DNA of 21,942 bases from Paramoeba atlantica (GCA_977017575.1 CDRNVI010000239.1:1-21942); one strand, 5' to 3'; positions 1,077 to 10,514 are shown, numbered from the stretch's first letter. Translations and numbers: made by a program. Notes: a model not told the origin generated them from the letters alone.

Positions 1077-1108
1077 GGGGAGTTTCCAAACCAGCCAATT
1101 TAAATGGT
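1077..1108 (+). repeat. Left TIR of element A
   Basis: Aligns without gaps to B's left end (GGG.A..T...AAACCAG.CAA...AAATGGT.CC) and imperfectly to the reverse complement of 6342-6373. Confidence 0.7.
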
Positions 1109-1155
1109 TCCAAATTTGGAATAGCACAGAAAACGTTCTTTTTTGTGTTTTGTGA

Positions 1156-2091
1156 ATAGCCTTCATTCCTTGTTTGCCTTCCAACTTTTCTAAGGATTCT
1201 GTTGCTCTTTTCGTGAGTGGTTTTCAAAATTTTCAAAAAAGAAAAAATATAATAGCTTGTGGGGATGTGAGGAAACTTCAGTTCCTCCAAGAAACTCCGA
1301 ACCAGTGGAATTATGAGGGGTTTGTTCATGCTGAGAAAACTGCCAACAAGAACTATCTGGTTCAAACTTTGCTTACTCCTTCTAGAATATTTTCATCATC
1401 TTGTCCTTGCCAAAGTGGGCGAAACGCTCATAATAAATGTAAGCATGTTGCTGCATTATTGTTGAATCTCTTTTTTCTCACAAATCATTTGAATTCTCTA
1501 CTGAAGTGGATTATGAATTGAAAGAAGAAACTTGCTCACTTTTCTTGTCCTCCTGATTGGCCACTTTACCAGAAAATCAGATTTGATTTGAATTGGAATG
1601 GGATCAAAAAAGGATTCTTTGAAGACATCCCAAGGCACAATGACAAGCGACCAATTCTTATTACATCCCCTGTGGTTTCAAAGAGAAAAAAAAAACAAAA
1701 AGAGAATGGAAAAAAGAAAATAGAAGTAATAGGAAAGAAAGATGAAAAGAAAGATGAGAAAGAAAAAAAGAAAGAGAAAGAGAAAGGGAAAGATGAAAAA
1801 GAAAAAGAGAAAAAGAAAGAGGAACAGGAGGAAGGGAAAAGAAAGCAGAAAGTGAGAGGGAAAAAGAAAGCAAAAGAAAAAGGAAAGAAAAAAGAAAAAG
1901 AAAAAAAAGATAAGGAAGGAAAAGAAGACAAAGAGAGAAAAAGAAAACAACAAGAACAAAGTTTGGAAACTTCCTTTGGCCCACCAAAAAGAAAAAAATC
2001 TCCAATTGGTTACCCAGAATACTTAAAAGGTGCAAGTCAATCAGCAAAAGAAAAGTGGAGAGTTTCTCAAATTCAATTGAAAGAAAAATAA
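1156..2091 (+). pseudogene. Element A ORF2: SWIM zinc finger + Lys/Glu-rich protein (312 codons, disrupted)
   Basis: SWIM motif CPCQSGRNAHNKCKHVAALL. ORFs 1174-1521 and 1588-2091 share one frame, split by TGA at 1519-1521. The start codon is mutated to ATA at 1156 (IAFIP versus MAFVP in B). Confidence 0.85.
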
Positions 2092-2101
2092 ATATTTATT
2101 T

Positions 2102-2992
2102 TTAAATTTGTTAAATGTTGTTATTCAAAAGAAACCAATTCACAAGACCACAAGAGAACATAATCATTTTGTAAGTTCTCATTACATTAGAGCAACAGGT
2201 TGGGTTATGAAAAATTGGCCAACTTTTGATTCACTGGATTGTCCTCTCAACAACACCTTGCAAATGAGCAATCGCAGGGTCAAATTCAATATCTCACAGT
2301 TTGGAATCTTTGGCTTTCTCTCCAACTTCCTCACCTTTCTCATTCACTTCCTTTGTTTCTTCCACTGTCTTCATCACTCACACAACCCATCCATCAGGTT
2401 TTGAAGCATAAGAATATGCTTTGTCTCCTCCAATCTTTTTCTTGTACTTCTTTTCATCAACTTCTGTCTCACAGTTCAAATACTTTTGTGCAAGTTTTTC
2501 AGCCATCTTCTCATTTTCCCAGTGGGTTTTATCATGGATCAATCCTCTTTCAAATTTTTTGGAAACATATACAATCTGTCCATGAGGTGAGATAACAACA
2601 AAAAAAACAATGGCTTGAACTGAGTGCTTTCCATTCTGAAAAGTCCACGATGTGAGAGGGCACTGTGTATTGTTCACTTCAACAACCATTCCATCCACAA
2701 AATAAAACAGGGTGTTCCAAAACTTCTGGTATTTTTCTTGAGAGTAAATTTTCCATGAATTATCAATCCATTCTTTATCAAAGAGAAAGTAGATTTGCTC
2801 CTTTGCCCAGGGCAGAAGGTCATCCAAGATCTTATCAAACCATCTTGTCAGTGTTGTGTTTGATATTGTTGTGTCATTCACATAAAAAGACTTTGCAATT
2901 GTTTCCATTGGAAGGCCTGTTGAAAAAGTGAAAAAGAGTAAATCCAATAAATTTTCAGGAGTAAATTTAACTGATGGGCAATTGCTTGGCAT
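2102..2992 (-). pseudogene. Element A transposase, C-terminal half (HTH-like + DDE_Tnp_4-type catalytic domain)
   Basis: Catalytic-type motifs YFVDG (D1), GGDKAY (D2) and GVVERTIQ*IKSW (E), typical of IS5/ISL2/Harbinger transposases. In-frame stops at 2378, about 2293, about 2231 and 2111; no frameshift. Confidence 0.85.
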
Positions 2993-3024
2993 GGGCAAAT
3001 AAAAAACCAGTCAAAAAAAATGGT
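2993..3024 (+). repeat. Left TIR of element B
   Basis: GGGCAAATAAAAAACCAGTCAAAAAAAATGGT, an imperfect inverted copy of 5545-5574 whose first 8 nt match perfectly. Confidence 0.85.
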
Positions 3025-3071
3025 CCCTACTTTTAGATAAGCTTTTTTTGTTTTTTTGTTTTTGTTTGAGA

Positions 3072-3875
3072 ATGGCGTTTGTTCCTGCGATGTCTGATGC
3101 ATTTTCTGAAGACACAATCTTGCTTTATGTTGTGGGAAAGCAGAATTTCAACAGAGTCAAAGTGATGATTGCTTGTGGTGATGTTCATGATCTTCATTTC
3201 TCTGAATCAGAAGCTGGTCAATGGAACTACGAAGCATTTGTCCATGCAGAGATGGTTGCCAACAAGAATTACCTTGTTTGTGTTTCACTTGCTTGTTCTT
3301 CAATTCTGACCACAAAATGTGTTTGCAAGGCCTTCAAGAACAAGCATAACAAGTGTAAGCATGTTGCTGCTTTATTGTTGACTCTTTTTCTTCTTGCAAA
3401 ATGTCCAAACTCTCCACCGAAGTGGATCACAAATTGAAGAAGAAAGTTTGTGTCAATGAAATGTCCTTCTGATTGGGCAATTTATAAAAAAATCAAATTT
3501 GATTTGGATTGGGATGGAATTAAATGAGGATTTTTTGAGAAAGTCCCAAAACACAATGATAAAGCTCCAGTCCTTATCACTTCCCCAGAGGTAAAGAAGA
3601 GAAAGAAAAAAGATCCAGAAAAGAAACAAACAAACAAAAAAGAAAGTCAAGAAAAAAAAAGTTAGAAAAAGAAAGAATCAAAGATAAAAGAAAGGGAAGA
3701 GGAAGGGGTGGAGAAGAAGAAGAAAAGAAAAAGAGAATGTGAAAAACCCCTTCAGTTTGGGCCAACAAAAAGAAAGAGAACACCAATCTCATACCCAAAA
3801 GAATTGGAAGGAACAAGTCAATCAAAAAAAGAAGAATGGTGACTTGCTTAAGTTTTGGAAGAAGTAAAAAAATAA
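3072..3875 (+). pseudogene. Element B ORF2: SWIM zinc finger + Lys/Glu-rich protein (268 codons, disrupted)
   Basis: ATG at 3072; CVCKAFKNKHNKCKHVAALL. Collinear with A's ORF2 through FGPxKRKxxPIxYP...GxSQS. In-frame stops at 3435, 3525, 3663, 3840 and 3849. Confidence 0.85.
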
Positions 3876-3896
3876 AATCAAAAATATTATTAGTAT

Positions 3897-5454
3897 TTAA
3901 ATTTGTTTAATATTACATTTTTCAAGAAACCAATTCATCAAAGCAGCAGAAAACAAAATCATTTTGTATGTTCACATCAAGTTGTTACAATGGCTTGGTT
4001 GTTGGAATATTGGCCAGCATTTAATTTGTTGGATCGTTTGTTTGACAACACCTTGCAATCGTGCAATTGCAGGATCAAAGACAACATCCTTCAACTGAGC
4101 ATTCTTTGCCTTCTCCCCCACCTCCTCTCCTTCTTTGTCCAGATTTCAAGTTTCCTCACCAGATTTTGTAATTCTTATGCCCCACCCTTCAGGTTTGTTG
4201 ATGTAAGGATATGCTTTGTCCCCCCCAATCTCTCTCTTAAAGGTTTCCCCATTGATACAAGTTTCGTGGCTCAAATACATGTGAGTGAGTTCTTTCACCA
4301 CAGAAGCCTCATTCCAATGGGTTTTGTCATGAACTGATCCATCTTAAAGGTTGTTTGAAAGATAAACAATTCATCCACAAGGAGAAACAACAACAAAAAA
4401 CACATATGCTGGGATTGTATGTTTTCCATTTCGAATTGCACAGGAGATTAAAGGGTCACCACTATTTTGTCATTCCACCACAGTTCCATCAGCAAAATAG
4501 AAAAGGGTTTTCCAATATTGTTGATACTCATGTGTTTCACAAATTTTCCAGGAATCACAAATCCACTCTTCATCAGAAAGAAAGAAGATTTGAGATTTTG
4601 TCCATGGGAGAAGATCTTCCAATGCTCCATCAAACCAATTTATCAATGTTTTTGAACAAATCAGTTGATCATCCACATAAAATGATTTTGCAATTGTCTC
4701 AAAAGGGAGTCCTGTTGAAAATGTAAAAAAAAGTAAATCTAAAAGGAGACTTGGGGTTTTTTTTACAACTGAGGAAGTTGGATCAATTTTGAGATATCCA
4801 GTGAGTTCAGAGAAAAGCTCATTGTGGATTCTTGGATCCTTTATTCAAAACCATGATACCTTATCTTCAATCTCACTAAGGTTCAAATGAATTCCTGCTT
4901 TTTGTTTCATTAGTCTTCTTTTCATGTGGTGGAAATTTCTTTCAACTTCCATTTTCTGTTGGTCCAGAACAGAAACACGGAACTGTAATTCCTCATTTTT
5001 TTCCTCCACTTCTTCTTGCTTCTTTTCCACTTCTTCTTGCTTCTTTTTCAAATTCACAATTTCTTCTTTCAACTGGGAAACCAAATTGAGTTTTGGTCTT
5101 TGAGAAGAGACAAACTCTCAGGGGTACAGAGCCTTTTGTTTTGAGTTTCTACTGGAGATTCATGAGAAACTTTCAAATCCCTGTTTTTTTTTCAAGTGAG
5201 TTCAATGGACACAAAAGAAATTAAAATAGAGAGGCTACATTGATTTTTTTTATCCCAGGGTAGGTTCTCCTTGTGTATCGAACCACCTCCTCATGATCAT
5301 GATCATTGAAGTGATCACAACATAAATATACATGTTTGGATGGTGTTTCTTTTTGGTGGATTTGACAAAGCCATTCAAGGTCATCTCTAGGTAAGGTTTT
5401 ACTCATGTGTGTTGTCTTGACAACTTGTTCACAAAGATAACATTTCAATCCCAT
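3897..5454 (-). pseudogene. Element B THAP-DDE transposase (500 codons after splicing, disrupted)
   Basis: MGLKCYLC...W...LCCDHF (THAP-like); intron 5238-5181; coiled coil; YFADG and GGDKAY. The third catalytic Glu is mutated to Lys (GTC AAA). Eight premature stops and no frameshift. Confidence 0.85.
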
Positions 5455-5544
5455 TTTCAGAGACAAACCACAGGAAATGCACAAAAAGAAAAAACAGGCA
5501 AAAAGCTTATTTCAAATATGGGTAATAGACCCTATTATTTAAAC

Positions 5545-5574
5545 ACCTAAATTTTGGCTATTTTTCATTTGCCC
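5545..5574 (-). repeat. Right TIR of element B
   Basis: Reverse complement GGGCAAATGAAAAATAGCCAAAATTTAGGT. Confidence 0.85.
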
Positions 5575-6242
5575 ATGACAAGTCTTCCAGAGAGTTCTGC
5601 AAAAAGTTGTTGATGGAGGGCAACATTCTTTGTCCAAAACCAACAAACTTTCTCTTCAATATCACCAAGTGAGATACAAATTCCTGATTTTCTTTTTCAA
5701 ATTCTTTTTTCTTCTTCTTCTTCATCAATTCTCTTTGATTGTTCACTGTTTTGTTGTTGGAGCACACAAATCTGAAAATCTGAGTTGGTTTTGTTTCTCT
5801 CTAACTCTTGATTCTTTCTCTCTAACTCTTCAATTCTTGCTGTTAAAGAAGAAATTTGATCTCTTTCAATCTTTTTCTTCTTTGGTGGAGGTTTGTCTTG
5901 GGGGGTCAGAGACTTTTGTTTTGATGGACGAGAAAAATTTTCGAATTCCTGATGAAAAGTTTAATAATGAGAAGAAGAAGAAAGAAAGAATAACATAGTT
6001 TTTACCTCCATTTTTTTAATCCCAGGAAATATTTTCTTTTCAAATCAAAAGATGCCTTCATGGGCATTAAAATGCGTACAACAAACACAGTGAGTGGTAG
6101 AGTGAGTGGGAGAGTGAGGGACAGTTTTCGAATAGATCTTGCATAAAAACACAAAATCATTTGTTGGAATTGAAGTTATTGTATGTTGGTGGGCACTGGT
6201 TTCAAGATCACAACCACAAAGGAAACATTTTTTCATTCCCAT
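5575..6242 (-). pseudogene. Element A transposase, N-terminal half (THAP-like C2CH zinc finger + coiled coil)
   Basis: MGMKKCFLCGC...CVCCTHF. GT-AG intron 6005-5949. Collinear with B's N-terminus (FPGIKK/YPGIKK, SKQKSL/SKQKAL, IEEKVCWF/IEDKVSWF, ELSG/ELTG). Confidence 0.8.
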
Positions 6243-6341
6243 TCTGAAAATGAAGACTGAGAAAACGCACCATCTTTCACTCCAACAGCTTTCCACGGAA
6301 AAATATTATTTAAAAATAGGGGCACCCCCCCTATTTTTTTA

Positions 6342-6373
6342 AACACCCAAATTTGACTTTATGGGAATTGCCC
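6342..6373 (-). repeat. Right TIR of element A
   Basis: Ends ...AATTGCCC followed by AT. Similar to B's right end (AAACACC.AAATTT..G.CT...TTGCCC). Confidence 0.75.
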
Positions 6374-7059
6374 ATGTCTTTTATCATATGTGTCCCAAAA
6401 GCCAAAAAGAACAAAAGAAAGTTTACGCTCTTTCACCCACAAATGGGTCCAAAGAACAAAACCTCTTTTGTACAAAAAAGGGCAACAAATAATTTACAAT
6501 TATTCACAATTGGAAAACACACACAAAACAGTTCAGTGTTTCTGCTCACCAACAAAACGACAAAGTCAACAAAACCAACTATGACAACCCAACACACAGG
6601 AGCAACAAGGTTTATTAATAATAAATAAAAGCAAACCAAAACTAGTTTGAACAAAGATTCCCAAAATCAAATAACCACAAGGGGAAAAAAAGAAACAGGC
6701 AGGAAATGGGCCTTTGCACACTTCTACTCAACGAAACTGATGATCGACAAACAGTGATCAGGAAACAATATCAACATCTCCCTGAGAAGTTTCTCAAGGA
6801 AGGCAGACCTGCACCTCATTCTTCTTTTTTTCTTCCTCTTCTTCTTGTTCCTCCTCTTCTCATTCCTTTCATTCTCTTTCTTCTTCCGTCTCTTCTCTCT
6901 TCTTCTTCTCTTTTCTCTTCTTTCTCTCTTCTTCTCTGCTCAGAGAGAAAAAGTCAACACTCTCAATCCTCCTTCTCCTCTCAACCCTCTTCTCCCCTTC
7001 TTTTTCTACCAACTTCCTCTCTTCAATCAATTACCTCAAAAGATATTTTCCAATCTTTT

Positions 7060-7932
7060 CTACTTTGCTGATTTGATGTTAATAATCCCTTCGTGAGAGA
7101 GCTCCTTCGCCACAAAATCAAACACTTCAGCAACCCCGATATCATCTTTTGCACTTGTTTCAAAATAATGACATTGATTCCCTTCAAAATGAGATAAACA
7201 CCATTCTCGACCTTCTTGCTCACTCACTTGCCTCTCTTTTACCAAATCAACCTTTGAACCAACAACAATAAAGAGAGGAGAGTTTTGGGGAGTGAATGCA
7301 TGTGTCATACATTCTTTTTCCCAATGTTCAAGACGATCAAAAGAATTTCGATTTGCCAAATCAAAGACCAAGAAAACTGCATCACTTCCACGGTAGAACA
7401 CTGGACCAATACTGTGATATCTTTCTTGTCCAGCTGTATCCCAAAACTAGAATTGACAGGAAAGAAGACAGAATTATCAAAAGAAAAAACACATTGTTCC
7501 CACTCAATCTCTTTCTTTCTCTTCTTTTTTCTTTCTCTTCCTTTCTCTTCTTTTCCTTATTGGTTCTCTGTGTCAATAAGTTTCTTTCACAACACACACG
7601 TCGTGTTTGATGAAAGACAAACCTCAAGGGTGATTTTTCGATCATCAGGTAAATCAATTTTTGCTGTTAAAAAACTCACCCCAATAGTCGAGACTGGGAT
7701 GGGATCAAATCTTTTATACATGTACCGTGTAATCAAAGAAGATTTTCCAACTCTAAAAAAGAGGTTGTTTGAAAGAGAAACAATTTTTGCTCTCACCCAC
7801 TCTTTTTTTTTATCAAAAACAAAAAACAAACCCAGGTTCTCCAACAAAAGTAACTTTAACTTTCTCTTTAATTTTTTGGGGGATGAGACAATCCAATTCT
7901 TGTTCTGTTTCTTCACCAGAACAACATGCCAT
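7060..7932 (-). CDS. Rab-family small GTPase (3 exons: 7932-7832, 7752-7623, 7446-7060)
   Basis: Spliced model gives G1 GEPGVGKSS, switch I STIGVSF, G3 FWDTAGQERY, G4 GSKVD and G5 ETSAK. Both introns are GT-AG and in phase. Subfamily not assignable by eye. Confidence 0.9.
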
Positions 7933-8155
7933 GTTGTCTGCTGTTTCTGCAAGAAATTCAAAAAAAAAAAACGAAAATTGGAAAATTGGGTCGTTTTATC
8001 GATTTTGTTATTATTTTGAAATGTTGTTCTCTTTTTGTGTTTGTGTGGAAAATAATCAAACTTTGATTTCACTATGAAATTTCATTCCAATATTTTGGTT
8101 TTGGTTTATTCCCATAAAATATTTAATAAAAAAGATAAAACAAGTTTTTTTCCCC

Positions 8156-8990
8156 TTATTTCAAGCTTGGTGATGATATTGAACACAACGCCTTGCTCAA
8201 CAACCCTGACCTTTTTTTCTTCTCTTTCTTCTCTTTCTTTTCCATCCCGCGGCAATTTTTTAATTGTTTGTTGATTGAGTTACTTGGGCGCAGAAATTGG
8301 TGGGCCAAATCTAACTGAACAATATCGTGGGCCCCTGCACGGCAGCCGAGACAACCCGCGAGCGCTCTTTCTTGTTCCAGTGACAAGGGGTATTGAATGT
8401 AATCAACGATCGTAGCGCTCAGCTAAAAAAAGAGAGAGAAGAAGAAAATAATCATTTAGGTGTTTGAAAAAAAAAATTGAAATTCAGCCCCAAAGTTTTG
8501 TTATTACCTGAGTGGAAAGAACCCGAAAACGATCTCCCTGCAAGATGATCATTGTTTGGCCATTCCCTGCTGGGAATTCGTAGGTAGTGTGTTTGTTTAA
8601 CCGAATAGTCCCCACTCCTCCACCCTGAGAGAACTTGCCACTCACATCTGACATTGCAAGAAGAGGGGTATCCTCCAAGACTGTGAGGGAACAGTGAATC
8701 CCAGCAGGGCCGGTGGAGTTGTCAATGGTAATCACCGATTCAGAACTGAGGAGAGGAGTCCCCCCAATGTCGGTAATATGGCCGTCATCGTTGGTGTTGG
8801 CATCCATGATATAGTAGGTGGCAATGACCAATCCGAACGTGGCGAGCAACACGAGCATGATGACGATAAAGAAGATAATCAAGAGGTTTTTCAGGTCCAC
8901 GATTTGGTTCCCACCCTCATCGATTTTCGTTTCAATCATGGTCCATGATCGACTACTCGAGTTTTTCATCGCAGATCGAGGCGATTCCAT
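8156..8990 (-). CDS. Predicted membrane-anchored protein of unknown function (exons 8990-8508 and 8422-8156; about 249 aa)
   Basis: Long hydrophobic segment LLIIFFIVIMLVLLATFGLVIATYYIM. A phase-0 GT-AG intron (8507-8423) joins two open frames. The start and 3' end are uncertain. Confidence 0.6.
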
Positions 8991-9275
8991 CTTGGAGAAA
9001 TTTTTGACCCAGAGTCTCAAACAACAAAAGATCAAGAACCAGAAAAACAACTTAAAAACCAAAAAGACCCGATGAAGATACGAACGAAAGGTGGTCTGGT
9101 AGGGACAATCCCGTTCAAAAATAGTGCGGGGGTCGGGAAAACGAGATTTCTGCGTCACAGTTTCTGACGTGGCGGCCTCTCATTGGACAATCGAGTGAAA
9201 GTTTTTCGGTAACATTTTGGAACAACGCCAATTTTTTTGTTTTTTTTGTTTTTGCACACCACTGAACCACCGAAG
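8991..9275. promoter_or_regulatory. Putative bidirectional promoter
   Basis: 285 bp between divergent ATGs at 8990 (-) and 9276 (+). CpG-rich, with inverted CGTCA-N7-TGACG (CRE-like half sites, 9153-9169) and an ATTGG/CCAAT-like box near 9182. Confidence 0.4.
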
Positions 9276-10514
9276 ATGGCCAATCTCGTTTTCTCGCTCT
9301 TCCTTCTTCCCTTCCTCCTTTTCTTTCGTTCATCTACTTGTTATGTTTGCGGGACTGATTACTCAGGAGAAACATTGCGCATGGTAGGTCCAGACCAATA
9401 CATCTGTATGTTTTCCTCCTATAGTTTTTTAAACCAACAAGCCTATTACGGTGTTCCTTTCACCCAGTATCAAGCTGACCGGAACGCTATCGAGTTCATC
9501 TTGCCCACAGATGAATTCACTTCTGGGGCTTTCGACATTGGTGGGAGTACCCTGGCGATTACCCATTCCTTTGACTACCATTACAGTTGCCACGAATGGT
9601 CTTTTTCAATTGATTGGACAATTCCGGTTTCTAAGAGTTTTGACGATCTCATGGAACGTGCGAATGGAGAGAGCACCTTCACCTGGTACCCCACCCAAGA
9701 CGATTTAAGCCAACCTCCCTGGTCTTTCCTGCCTGCCGACCTCCGCTCGAAATTCGAAAATATGCTCTACCTTGGCTGGGCTATGAATGACGAAGGTACT
9801 GATGTAGAAAGTTGTTTATTGATCATCGAACTCCCCGAAATTCCAACATCGCTCGATCGTTACGGCATCCTTTGGGTAGACGAATCTGCGGAAGAACACC
9901 GCTTAGCCACCAATCTGCCAGTGGATGGGTATGGCACTCCCGACTTCACCTTCAATTTTCCTGCGGCTGTTTACACCGACCAAGGATATGAGGAGTACTC
10001 CATTCAAGCCTGTACTGGTTCCCTTCCAATCTGCTGGTGTTTTACTCCCAACCCAAGCTCCTCTTCATCCACCCCACTGATGCAACTAAGCGCATTATAC
10101 AAGAATGGAGCGATCGTCTCTGGTCAGCTCCTTCAACTCTCCGAAGCAAACACCCCTTCTTGCTACTCCAGTGTCTACATTTCGTGGAGCTACCCCACTG
10201 GGGCACGAACATATTTCCGAAAGACATCAGACTCGAGTTGCAGTAGTAATGACATTCAGGAGGACCAGACATGCGTGGGAGATCAATTCGCCAATGCCAT
10301 CAGCAGTTGCACTGAACCAGCCGATCATTACCCTATGACAGATTATCATTTTAATGATCCAGAAGCTACTTGTTGTGGGAGGTTGAGTGGAGAAACCGAG
10401 AACACTGATAGAGAACGAGTGATGAATCAACAAATGAAAGTCACTTCCATTGATGTTGATTGGGCCTCCCCAGATTGGTCCTCTTATGTGACATGGTGTT
10501 CCAGGGTTGGTTAA
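9276..10514 (+). CDS. Intronless Cys-rich secreted protein of unknown function (412 aa)
   Basis: 1239-nt single ORF. Signal-peptide-like N-terminus MANLVFSLFLLPFLLFFRSSTC; about 15 Cys; no recognisable domain. Confidence 0.8.
   Translation: MANLVFSLFLLPFLLFFRSSTCYVCGTDYSGETLRMVGPDQYICMFSSYSFLNQQAYYGVPFTQYQADRNAIEFILPTDEFTSGAFDIGGSTLAITHSFDYHYSCHEWSFSIDWTIPVSKSFDDLMERANGESTFTWYPTQDDLSQPPWSFLPADLRSKFENMLYLGWAMNDEGTDVESCLLIIELPEIPTSLDRYGILWVDESAEEHRLATNLPVDGYGTPDFTFNFPAAVYTDQGYEEYSIQACTGSLPICWCFTPNPSSSSSTPLMQLSALYKNGAIVSGQLLQLSEANTPSCYSSVYISWSYPTGARTYFRKTSDSSCSSNDIQEDQTCVGDQFANAISSCTEPADHYPMTDYHFNDPEATCCGRLSGETENTDRERVMNQQMKVTSIDVDWASPDWSSYVTWCSRVG

Follow-up and report, generated by a model that had tools for sequence, protein, structure and literature searches.

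PHIS (PIF/Harbinger-ISL2EU-Spy) transposons are classic cut-and-paste elements that require a second, non-catalytic protein; to our knowledge, the function of this partner in one group of the superfamily, ISL2EU, is still unknown. The ISL2EU group of PHIS was treated by Kapitonov and Jurka in 2007 and by Han et al. in 2014 and 2015. Its members are defined by AT target-site duplications, GG termini, a transposase that unites THAP, helix-turn-helix (HTH) and DDE domains, and a second open reading frame (ORF) with a YqaJ domain; their mean length is ~4.8 kb and they were recorded only from animal hosts in a 2015 survey (PMC4482050, PMC4122938). The name IS4EU is an older designation of the same group (PMC3673617). 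The Myb-like partner of Harbinger elements binds both DNA and the transposase and is needed for nuclear import of the latter (PMC9179366). Here a 21,942-bp stretch of DNA from Paramoeba atlantica was analyzed over its full length (the window), which corresponds to contig C239 of a 45.7-Mb assembly of 248 contigs. A preliminary description of this DNA had named the AT duplications, THAP transposase and YqaJ second ORF of ISL2EU, and these, together with the GG termini, agree with the published accounts (PMC4482050, PMC4122938). The window very probably contains two dead, nested copies of a compact two-gene cut-and-paste transposon of the PHIS kind, 2.6-2.7 kb in length, that lie ~150 bp inside the telomere. 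The second gene, ORF2, is predicted to specify a SWIM zinc-finger protein instead of a YqaJ protein.

The two copies are nested, with the inner element inserted at an AT dinucleotide within the transposase gene of the outer element. The outer element occupies 1077-2990 and 5577-6373 and measures 2713 bp without the insert, and the inner element, which represents a second subfamily, spans 2993-5574 (+ strand; 2582 bp). Both follow a common plan that consists of an AT/GGG left end (the slash marks the element boundary), ORF2 on the + strand, a convergent transposase gene on the - strand and a CCC/AT right end. The left part of the outer element (1077-2990, +) runs from the left terminus GGGGAGTTTCC... 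through ORF2 into the transposase gene, of which it includes the 3′ two-thirds; the right part (5577-6373, +) comprises the 5′ third of this gene and the right terminus ...GAATTGCCC. The inner element is bounded by GGGCAAAT...ATTTGCCC. The outer termini therefore read AT/GGGG...GCCC/AT and those of the inner element AT/GGGC...GCCC/AT. The AT target-site duplication of the outer element is located at 1075-1076 (left) and 6374-6375 (right), and that of the inner element at 2991-2992 with the second copy at 5575-5576.

Removal of the inner element plus one AT (2582 + 2 = 2584 bp) restores the outer reading frame. Only excision that keeps exactly one AT gives both this frame and a distance of 17 residues from the motif EL[ST]G to LLDLLFF, the spacing found in the inner transposase. 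Moreover, an uninterrupted copy of the outer family (2714 bp, 5392-8105, 95-97% identical) is present on an ENA contig, L076 (ERZ24900291). Outer positions 1077-2990 are 95% identical to L076:8105-6192 and positions 5577-6373 are 97% identical to L076:6189-5392, and L076:6190-6191 is a single AT at the location where the inner element sits in the window, i.e., an empty site. The preliminary description had reported two diverged copies of 2.6-2.7 kb with one layout. The coordinates and component parts are present as reported, but the copies do not lie side by side: the L076 empty site and the reading frames reveal the nesting. A tandem arrangement of two copies was ruled out by the same reading frames and by the uninterrupted state of the L076 copy.

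Eight further termini from this genome and from distant relatives read AT/GG...CC/AT. Termini with AT flanks were recorded at five sites within this genome; beyond the window copies, they lie at both ends of the C218 copy, on C137/C170, where the left end matches that of the outer element, and on C140, which has a right end alone. The diverged relatives on L078, L082, L079 and L080 also display AT/GG...CC/AT, and the same element is present in L081, L082 and L083 with three different left flanks. The terminal bases are GGGGG in L078, GGAC in L079, L080 and L082, and GGGG or GGGC in the window. Copies on C188 and C202 were left out of this examination. As the site in L076 is empty, the reading frame is restored and AT is present at every terminus examined, the dinucleotide is a true 2-bp target duplication, as had been proposed initially. 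A 3-bp duplication (CAT or ATG) was ruled out because only AT is common to all sites.

An imperfectly palindromic subterminal motif, AATAGACCCTATT, was noted at 5525-5537 in the window, at 1905-1921 and 4505-4523 in L078, and at 205-223 in L077. The motif thus recurs in the inner element, L077 and L078, whose proteins are only ~40% identical, and is a candidate protein-binding site for the N-terminal finger of the transposase or for the SWIM protein.

The transposase gene is split by one intron in both copies. In the outer element, exon 1 (6236-6006, -) specifies the THAP-like finger and includes a TGA at 6045-47 that is Arg in L076. The intron (6005-5949, -; 57 nt, GT..AG), which is the same as that at L076:5761-5817, is followed by exon 2. 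The proximal section of exon 2 (5948-5577, -) encodes a coiled coil and has a TGA at 5697-99, and the distal section (2990-2105, -) encodes an HTH-like region and the DDE_Tnp_4 core (24.9 bits). The distal section bears TGA codons at 2378-80, 2294-96 and 2231-33, at which the L076 residues are Arg, Gln and Arg, as well as a former CAA that is now TAA at 2111-13. When exon 2 is assembled as 5948-5577, AT and 2990-2105, the spliced outer transposase has 497 codons. In the inner element, exon 1 (5454-5239, -) specifies a THAP-like C2CH zinc finger, the intron (5238-5181, -) is 58 nt with GT..AG boundaries, and exon 2 (5180-3900, -) encodes the coiled coil, HTH-like region and DDE core with seven TGA and one TAA interruptions. 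The spliced product has 499 codons and its exon 2 is 55% identical to the outer DDE piece. The intron is at a homologous place in both subfamilies, after GIKK[MI][EN], and the lengths of 57 and 58 nt account exactly for a frame that is kept in the outer gene and shifted by one in the inner gene.

The protein searches were run with segments free of stops or with the ORF2 of L076, which is naturally intact. The Pfam DDE_Tnp_4 profile (PF13359; cut-off 24.8 bits), which marks the IS5-related DDE transposases of PHIS, matched the window transposase with 24.9 bits, the L076 protein with 32.7 bits and relatives with 43-77 bits. The motifs FVDG, G..HDKTHW, GGDKAY and VVER..G..K.W are conserved in the transposase alignment (A3), in which the region upstream of the DDE core includes the coiled coil and, where an HTH is expected, a helical block that is likewise conserved (LLDLLFFTFSTGL...TL.RWFD). 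The N-terminal exon contains C-x2-C-x44-C-x2-H-F and a conserved Pro, invariant in the alignment, which is a THAP signature. A fold search with the finger exon returned only 11 matches, including the THAP domains 3kde (P-element; Z 3.0) and 2jm3 (CtBP; Z 2.3) and ZAD domains (Z 3.5). On its cysteine and histidine pattern, the N-terminal C2CH finger is probably THAP-like, with weak support from Pfam and from the fold search. The transposase had no sequence relatives in the PDB, and the EukProt data for Paramoeba aestuarina include a transcript of a transposase fragment that is 52% identical to the family.

Outer ORF2 (1156-2091, +) consists of 311 codons that specify the SWIM N-terminal domain, a Lys/Glu-rich middle section and a conserved C-terminal tail. 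Two lesions disrupt this ORF: the start codon has changed from ATG to ATA, and a former CGA has become TGA at 1519-1521. Inner ORF2 (3072-3875, +) has 267 codons with TGA at 3435, 3525 and 3840, TAG at 3663 and TAA at 3849. An intact ORF2 of 311 amino acids is present at L076:7091-8026 (-). The preliminary description had placed the convergent ORF2 stop ~10-20 bp from the transposase stop, and the distances measure 10 bp in the outer and 21 bp in the inner element. The conserved blocks that it had pointed out (DWxxYxKIxFD, FGPxKRK and YPxxLxG) occur in the two copies and are found again elsewhere in the wider family.

The Pfam SWIM profile scored 21.7 bits with inner ORF2 and produced a weak match with outer ORF2. 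A profile built from the N-terminal 143 positions of ORF2 was searched against 1.84 billion representatives, and 120 clusters were retrieved at E<=1e-3 and 35 at E<=1e-10, most of which are 260-330 amino acids long with the same architecture. The family plan comprises an N-terminal domain of ~170 residues, a low-complexity basic/acidic linker and the tail KRKR..YP..L.G.S...KEKWR. Across 32 ORF2 sequences, residues C84, C94 and H96 of the CxC..CxH signature do not vary, and conservation at C82 is 90% or higher. Pfam searches with the 32 members matched SWIM (PF04434) in 13 (best E 1.4e-6), PHD in 11 and SAP in five; a PHD finger or SAP motif replaces or joins the basic linker in some members. 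The AlphaFold model of ORF2 has a mean predicted local distance difference test (pLDDT) score of 84.8, with values >90 over residues 10-170. The SWIM module of ZSWIM8 was the sole outstanding match to this fold (Foldseek probability 1.00): residues 4-108 of ORF2 superpose on residues 110-211 of ZSWIM8 (PDB 9rwz) with VIA Z 9.1 and a root-mean-square deviation of 2.2 Å over 95 residues at 20% identity, and the next VIA matches, at Z 5, were all single helices. By signature residues and predicted fold, ORF2 is assigned as a SWIM zinc-finger protein, and the Z 9.1 match to ZSWIM8 and the invariant C84, C94 and H96 bear out its initial designation as such.

The YqaJ profile (PF09588) produced no Pfam match in ORF2 or in any of the 32 homologues, and neither ORF2 fold search (Foldseek, VIA) returned a YqaJ or lambda-exonuclease chain; the initial impression that ORF2 includes no YqaJ nuclease is thereby sustained. 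ORF2 has no room for a nuclease domain. Only two YqaJ matches were detected in the entire assembly, on C53 and C15, contigs in which no family copies were found. Pfam matches to Myb/SANT were absent from ORF2 and its homologues (32 members), and ORF2 sequence relatives in the PDB were limited to PHD-finger matches that derive from other family members. Separately, in a set of long proteins (800-1900 amino acids; P0052, P0075, P0080, P0093 and others), 3-11 repeats in tandem match the ORF2 profile, and only over positions ~8-45. The repeated sub-motif is a '..E.I..Y..G.QNF.KG' helix pair, a repeat unit that is found in unrelated large proteins too.

The pairing of the two genes is conserved across a broad family in metagenomes and Paramoeba. 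An ORF2 homologue is arranged tail-to-tail with a DDE_Tnp_4 gene in L076, L077, two Logan contigs, L078 and L081-L083, with the stops in the relatives 0-14 bp apart or overlapping; in one further ENA contig the convergent gene is unannotated. The more distant L079 and L080, whose transposases are 34-35% identical, have convergent downstream ORFs with weak similarity to the SWIM N-terminal domain (hhalign probabilities of 18% and 81%) and a SAP motif. Tail-to-tail organization was observed in every context examined, and the two-gene pairing thus holds as the architecture of the family, as the preliminary description had suggested. The contigs of the relatives range from 38% to 60% GC and several of the genes are intron-split; therefore, the hosts are several different eukaryotes. 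Between the two subfamilies in the window, the ratio of nonsynonymous to synonymous substitutions (dN/dS, with dS saturated) was 0.15-0.18 in the N-terminal domain of ORF2 and 0.18 in exon 2 of the transposase. These low values in both genes indicate that both encoded working proteins while the subfamilies diverged.

The family is low-copy and all copies in this assembly are damaged. Besides the window, six contigs of the genome carry copies; together with the uninterrupted L076 copy and the low dN/dS of both genes, they show that the common layout is not a chance resemblance. The inner subfamily is represented elsewhere by C218:5541-7930 + 9083-9292, which is 96% identical, and by the solo right end on C140. 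The C218 copy is split by a 1152-bp insertion (L047:7931-9082) that has a poly-T start and a 14-bp direct repeat, ACAAAGCCATTCAA, on either side; from these sequence features the insertion looks like a poly(A) retroposon placed by target-primed reverse transcription. Outer-subfamily copies elsewhere in the genome are truncated and are located on C137/C170, C222/C200, C187 and C176. The L076 copy sits among Ty3/gypsy-type fragments (rve, Chromo and RT_RNaseH at L076:1-5400 and 8166-8870) in a transposon-rich region.

A working model for the intact element may be proposed. The transposase would bind subterminal sites via the N-terminal finger and would oligomerize through the coiled coil. DDE-catalyzed cleavage would then occur at the GGG ends, with integration at AT with a 2-bp stagger as in ISL2EU. 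ORF2 may bind DNA or chromatin and deliver the transposase to the nucleus or to the termini of the element, in the manner of the Myb-like protein of Harbinger. The PHD or SAP modules in place of the basic linker fit a chromatin- or DNA-tethering role for ORF2.

Several observations weigh against this interpretation of the element and its proteins. The inverted terminal repeats are short and imperfect: 13 of the first 14 bases match in the inner element, and over 40 bases the matches number 20 in the inner and 23 in the outer element. This genome contains no intact copies, and the L076 transposase, the best copy overall, retains two TGA stops. The preliminary description of a spliced THAP/coiled-coil/DDE transposase of ~500 codons is correct in length (497 and 499 codons) and in the DDE_Tnp_4 assignment, but the Pfam THAP scores of 21.2 bits (inner exon 1, E 5e-4) and 14.3 bits are below the cut-off of 23.9. 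The fold model of the finger has a pLDDT of only 70, and ZAD and THAP domains tie at Z 3.0-3.5. HTH_Tnp_4 (PF13613) gave no Pfam match at E<=1 in the transposase, and the spacer between the second catalytic D and the E is 58 residues in the L076 translation, compared with 34-52 from a published spacing formula (PMC4122938). The role suggested for ORF2 as a partner protein is drawn purely by analogy, and SWIM modules can serve in contacts between proteins as well; ZSWIM8, for example, is a ubiquitin-ligase substrate adaptor.

How the family relates to the described PHIS groups was considered with these points in mind. Like PIF/Harbinger elements, it combines a PHIS-type DDE transposase with a separate small partner gene. 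However, Harbinger produces a 3-bp TWA duplication and has a Myb/SANT partner and no THAP finger, whereas the family here has an AT duplication, a SWIM partner and convergent genes with stops that are 0-21 bp apart or overlapping. Spy and PHISTA share with it a related DDE core, compact elements and unusual target-site behavior within PHIS. Nevertheless, Spy generates no duplication and has a single gene and no SWIM partner, in contrast to the 2-bp duplication and two genes found here; PHISTA duplicates TA, may carry a TET/JBP gene and has no SWIM partner (PMC12730594). Pangu and Nuwa differ in their ANT and CWG duplications, respectively. It is unlikely that a different PHIS branch, such as Harbinger, Nuwa, Pangu or the TA-duplicating PHISTA, has converged on ISL2EU-like ends in these elements. 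NuwaI also typically has GGG termini (PMC4482050), PHISTA also has a 2-bp duplication (PMC12730594) and Pfam HTH_Tnp_4 was not detected, all of which would accommodate such convergence. Yet the duplication is AT and not TA, TWA, CWG or ANT, the partner protein is not Myb/SANT, and among these groups only ISL2EU is reported to have a C2CH finger at the N terminus (PMC4482050).

The likeness to ISL2EU extends to the AT duplication, termini that start with GG, two genes, a DDE_Tnp_4-type transposase, a preference for AT-rich targets and, probably, the N-terminal C2CH (THAP-like) finger. The nearest language-model neighbors of the transposase, which serve as a lead only, include an 'IS4EU-1_DR' cluster (score 0.91) and a cnidarian cluster with THAP, HTH_Tnp_4 and DDE_Tnp_4. 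These neighbors, together with an AT duplication, GG termini and THAP-like N terminus that fit the published definition (PMC4482050), would be compatible with an ordinary ISL2EU member that lost its YqaJ gene or once captured a host SWIM gene and that forms no separate lineage. This explanation is nonetheless quite improbable. The SWIM ORF2 is tail-to-tail in every relative examined, down to ~34% transposase identity and across 38% to 60% GC, and was under purifying selection together with the transposase. YqaJ is in or near no copy; the two matches in the assembly are on the contigs without found copies. Furthermore, the clade profile searches yielded 62 clusters that are all unnamed, none of which has precomputed THAP, HTH_Tnp_4 or YqaJ annotation. 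The family also departs from ISL2EU in the second gene (a SWIM zinc finger versus a YqaJ exonuclease-domain protein), in length (2.6-3.1 kb versus a mean of ~4.8 kb), in host (an amoeba-like protist and environmental eukaryotes versus animals), and in the absence of a Pfam HTH_Tnp_4 match and the longer D-to-E spacer.

The SWIM fingers of ZSWIM8 and of MuDR/Zisupton-type transposases have the CxC..CxH zinc-binding signature in common with ORF2, but in ORF2 the SWIM domain forms the core of a small accessory protein in its own right and is not a domain of a transposase or of a ubiquitin-ligase adaptor. A full-text literature search found no report of a SWIM partner in PHIS or ISL2EU elements. 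Set apart from the known groups by their published descriptions, the family is most likely an undescribed PHIS lineage. The chances appear evenly balanced that the SWIM-partnered elements constitute a distinct, undescribed PHIS group, sister to or within ISL2EU and widespread in protists and environmental eukaryotes, in which a SWIM protein, with or without PHD or SAP, took over the role of the Myb and YqaJ partners.

Both window copies of this SWIM-partnered transposon are dead, and their stops are scars of C-to-T decay, strongest at CpG, that converted CGA to TGA. One TGA is present at an identical ORF2 codon in both copies. This codon is CGA on C137, C170, C222 and C200 and CAA on C187, which indicates that the ancestral codon specified Arg; where the window has its other TGAs, the L076 and P0001 sequences specify Arg or Gln. 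At each site that was checked, CGA or CAA stands in other copies, and the stops are therefore attributable to decay and not to recoding. Comparison of the inner copy with its C218 relative revealed 88 transitions and one transversion, with more than half of CpG sites differing versus 6-9% of other cytosines. When the outer copy was compared with that on C137, T or A was on the window side at 43 of 46 transitions. The CpG observed/expected ratio is 0.12-0.14 in the two larger window pieces and 0.25 in the outer right arm, and 0.5-1.05 in the host. The pattern of transitions in the repeat copies points to repeat-directed cytosine deamination or methylation, beyond plain CpG decay. The genetic code is standard, because 16 of 17 full-length HSP70 matches have no in-frame TGA.

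It is scarcely credible that in-frame TGA is decoded or read through so that the copies are functional and the shared ORF2 TGA is a conserved recoding site, as might be imagined from the internal stops in the outer coding frames (six TGA and one TAA) and from the identical ORF2 position in the two subfamilies: the CGA and CAA codons at this position in the five other copies, the Arg or Gln residues in L076 and P0001, the HSP70 genes and the general C-to-T bias of the same copies all oppose it, outer ORF2 is without an ATG, and the inner copy has TAA and TAG stops too. An 18-19-nt intron that spans the shared TGA was also ruled out, since frames would differ between the copies and plain CGA is present elsewhere.

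The elements are located at a chromosome end. A nearly perfect (CCCTAAA)n telomere tract, evident by direct sequence reading, fills positions 1-927 (927 bp), and GC skew is -0.97 across the first kilobase of the window. The nested transposons start ~150 bp inside the telomere tract, such that dead mobile elements directly cap the chromosome end. The first host gene beyond them is a Rab-type small GTPase gene at 7060-8072 (-), which is split at least once, by a GT..AG intron of ~165 nt that separates ...KITLE from WDTAGQERY.... The assembly apparently combines two nuclear genomes, one kinetoplastid-looking and the other intron-bearing and amoeba-like. Some low-numbered contigs (C19, C43, C46 and C71) have tandem HSP70 arrays without introns that are kinetoplastid-looking, and HSP70 on C144, C177 and C182 matches in separate pieces, as though intron-split. 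Every copy of the transposon family is located on contigs C137-C239. As the neighboring Rab gene has a clear GT..AG intron, the window is assigned to the intron-bearing, amoeba-like nucleus.

Taken by themselves, the window copies are unremarkable dead relics, and together the copies record a strong C-to-T process on repeats in this genome that is strongest at CpG. With this family, the range of ISL2EU-like elements widens from animals to include an amoebozoan-type protist and many environmental eukaryotes, and the small size of the elements (2.6-3.1 kb) would allow direct tests of partner function. Retention of the ISL2EU target site and termini in a lineage with a SWIM partner implies that the partner slot in PHIS is modular. 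If the SWIM-partnered elements are truly a distinct group, the PHIS partner gene would have been replaced on three or more occasions, with the DDE core retained throughout.

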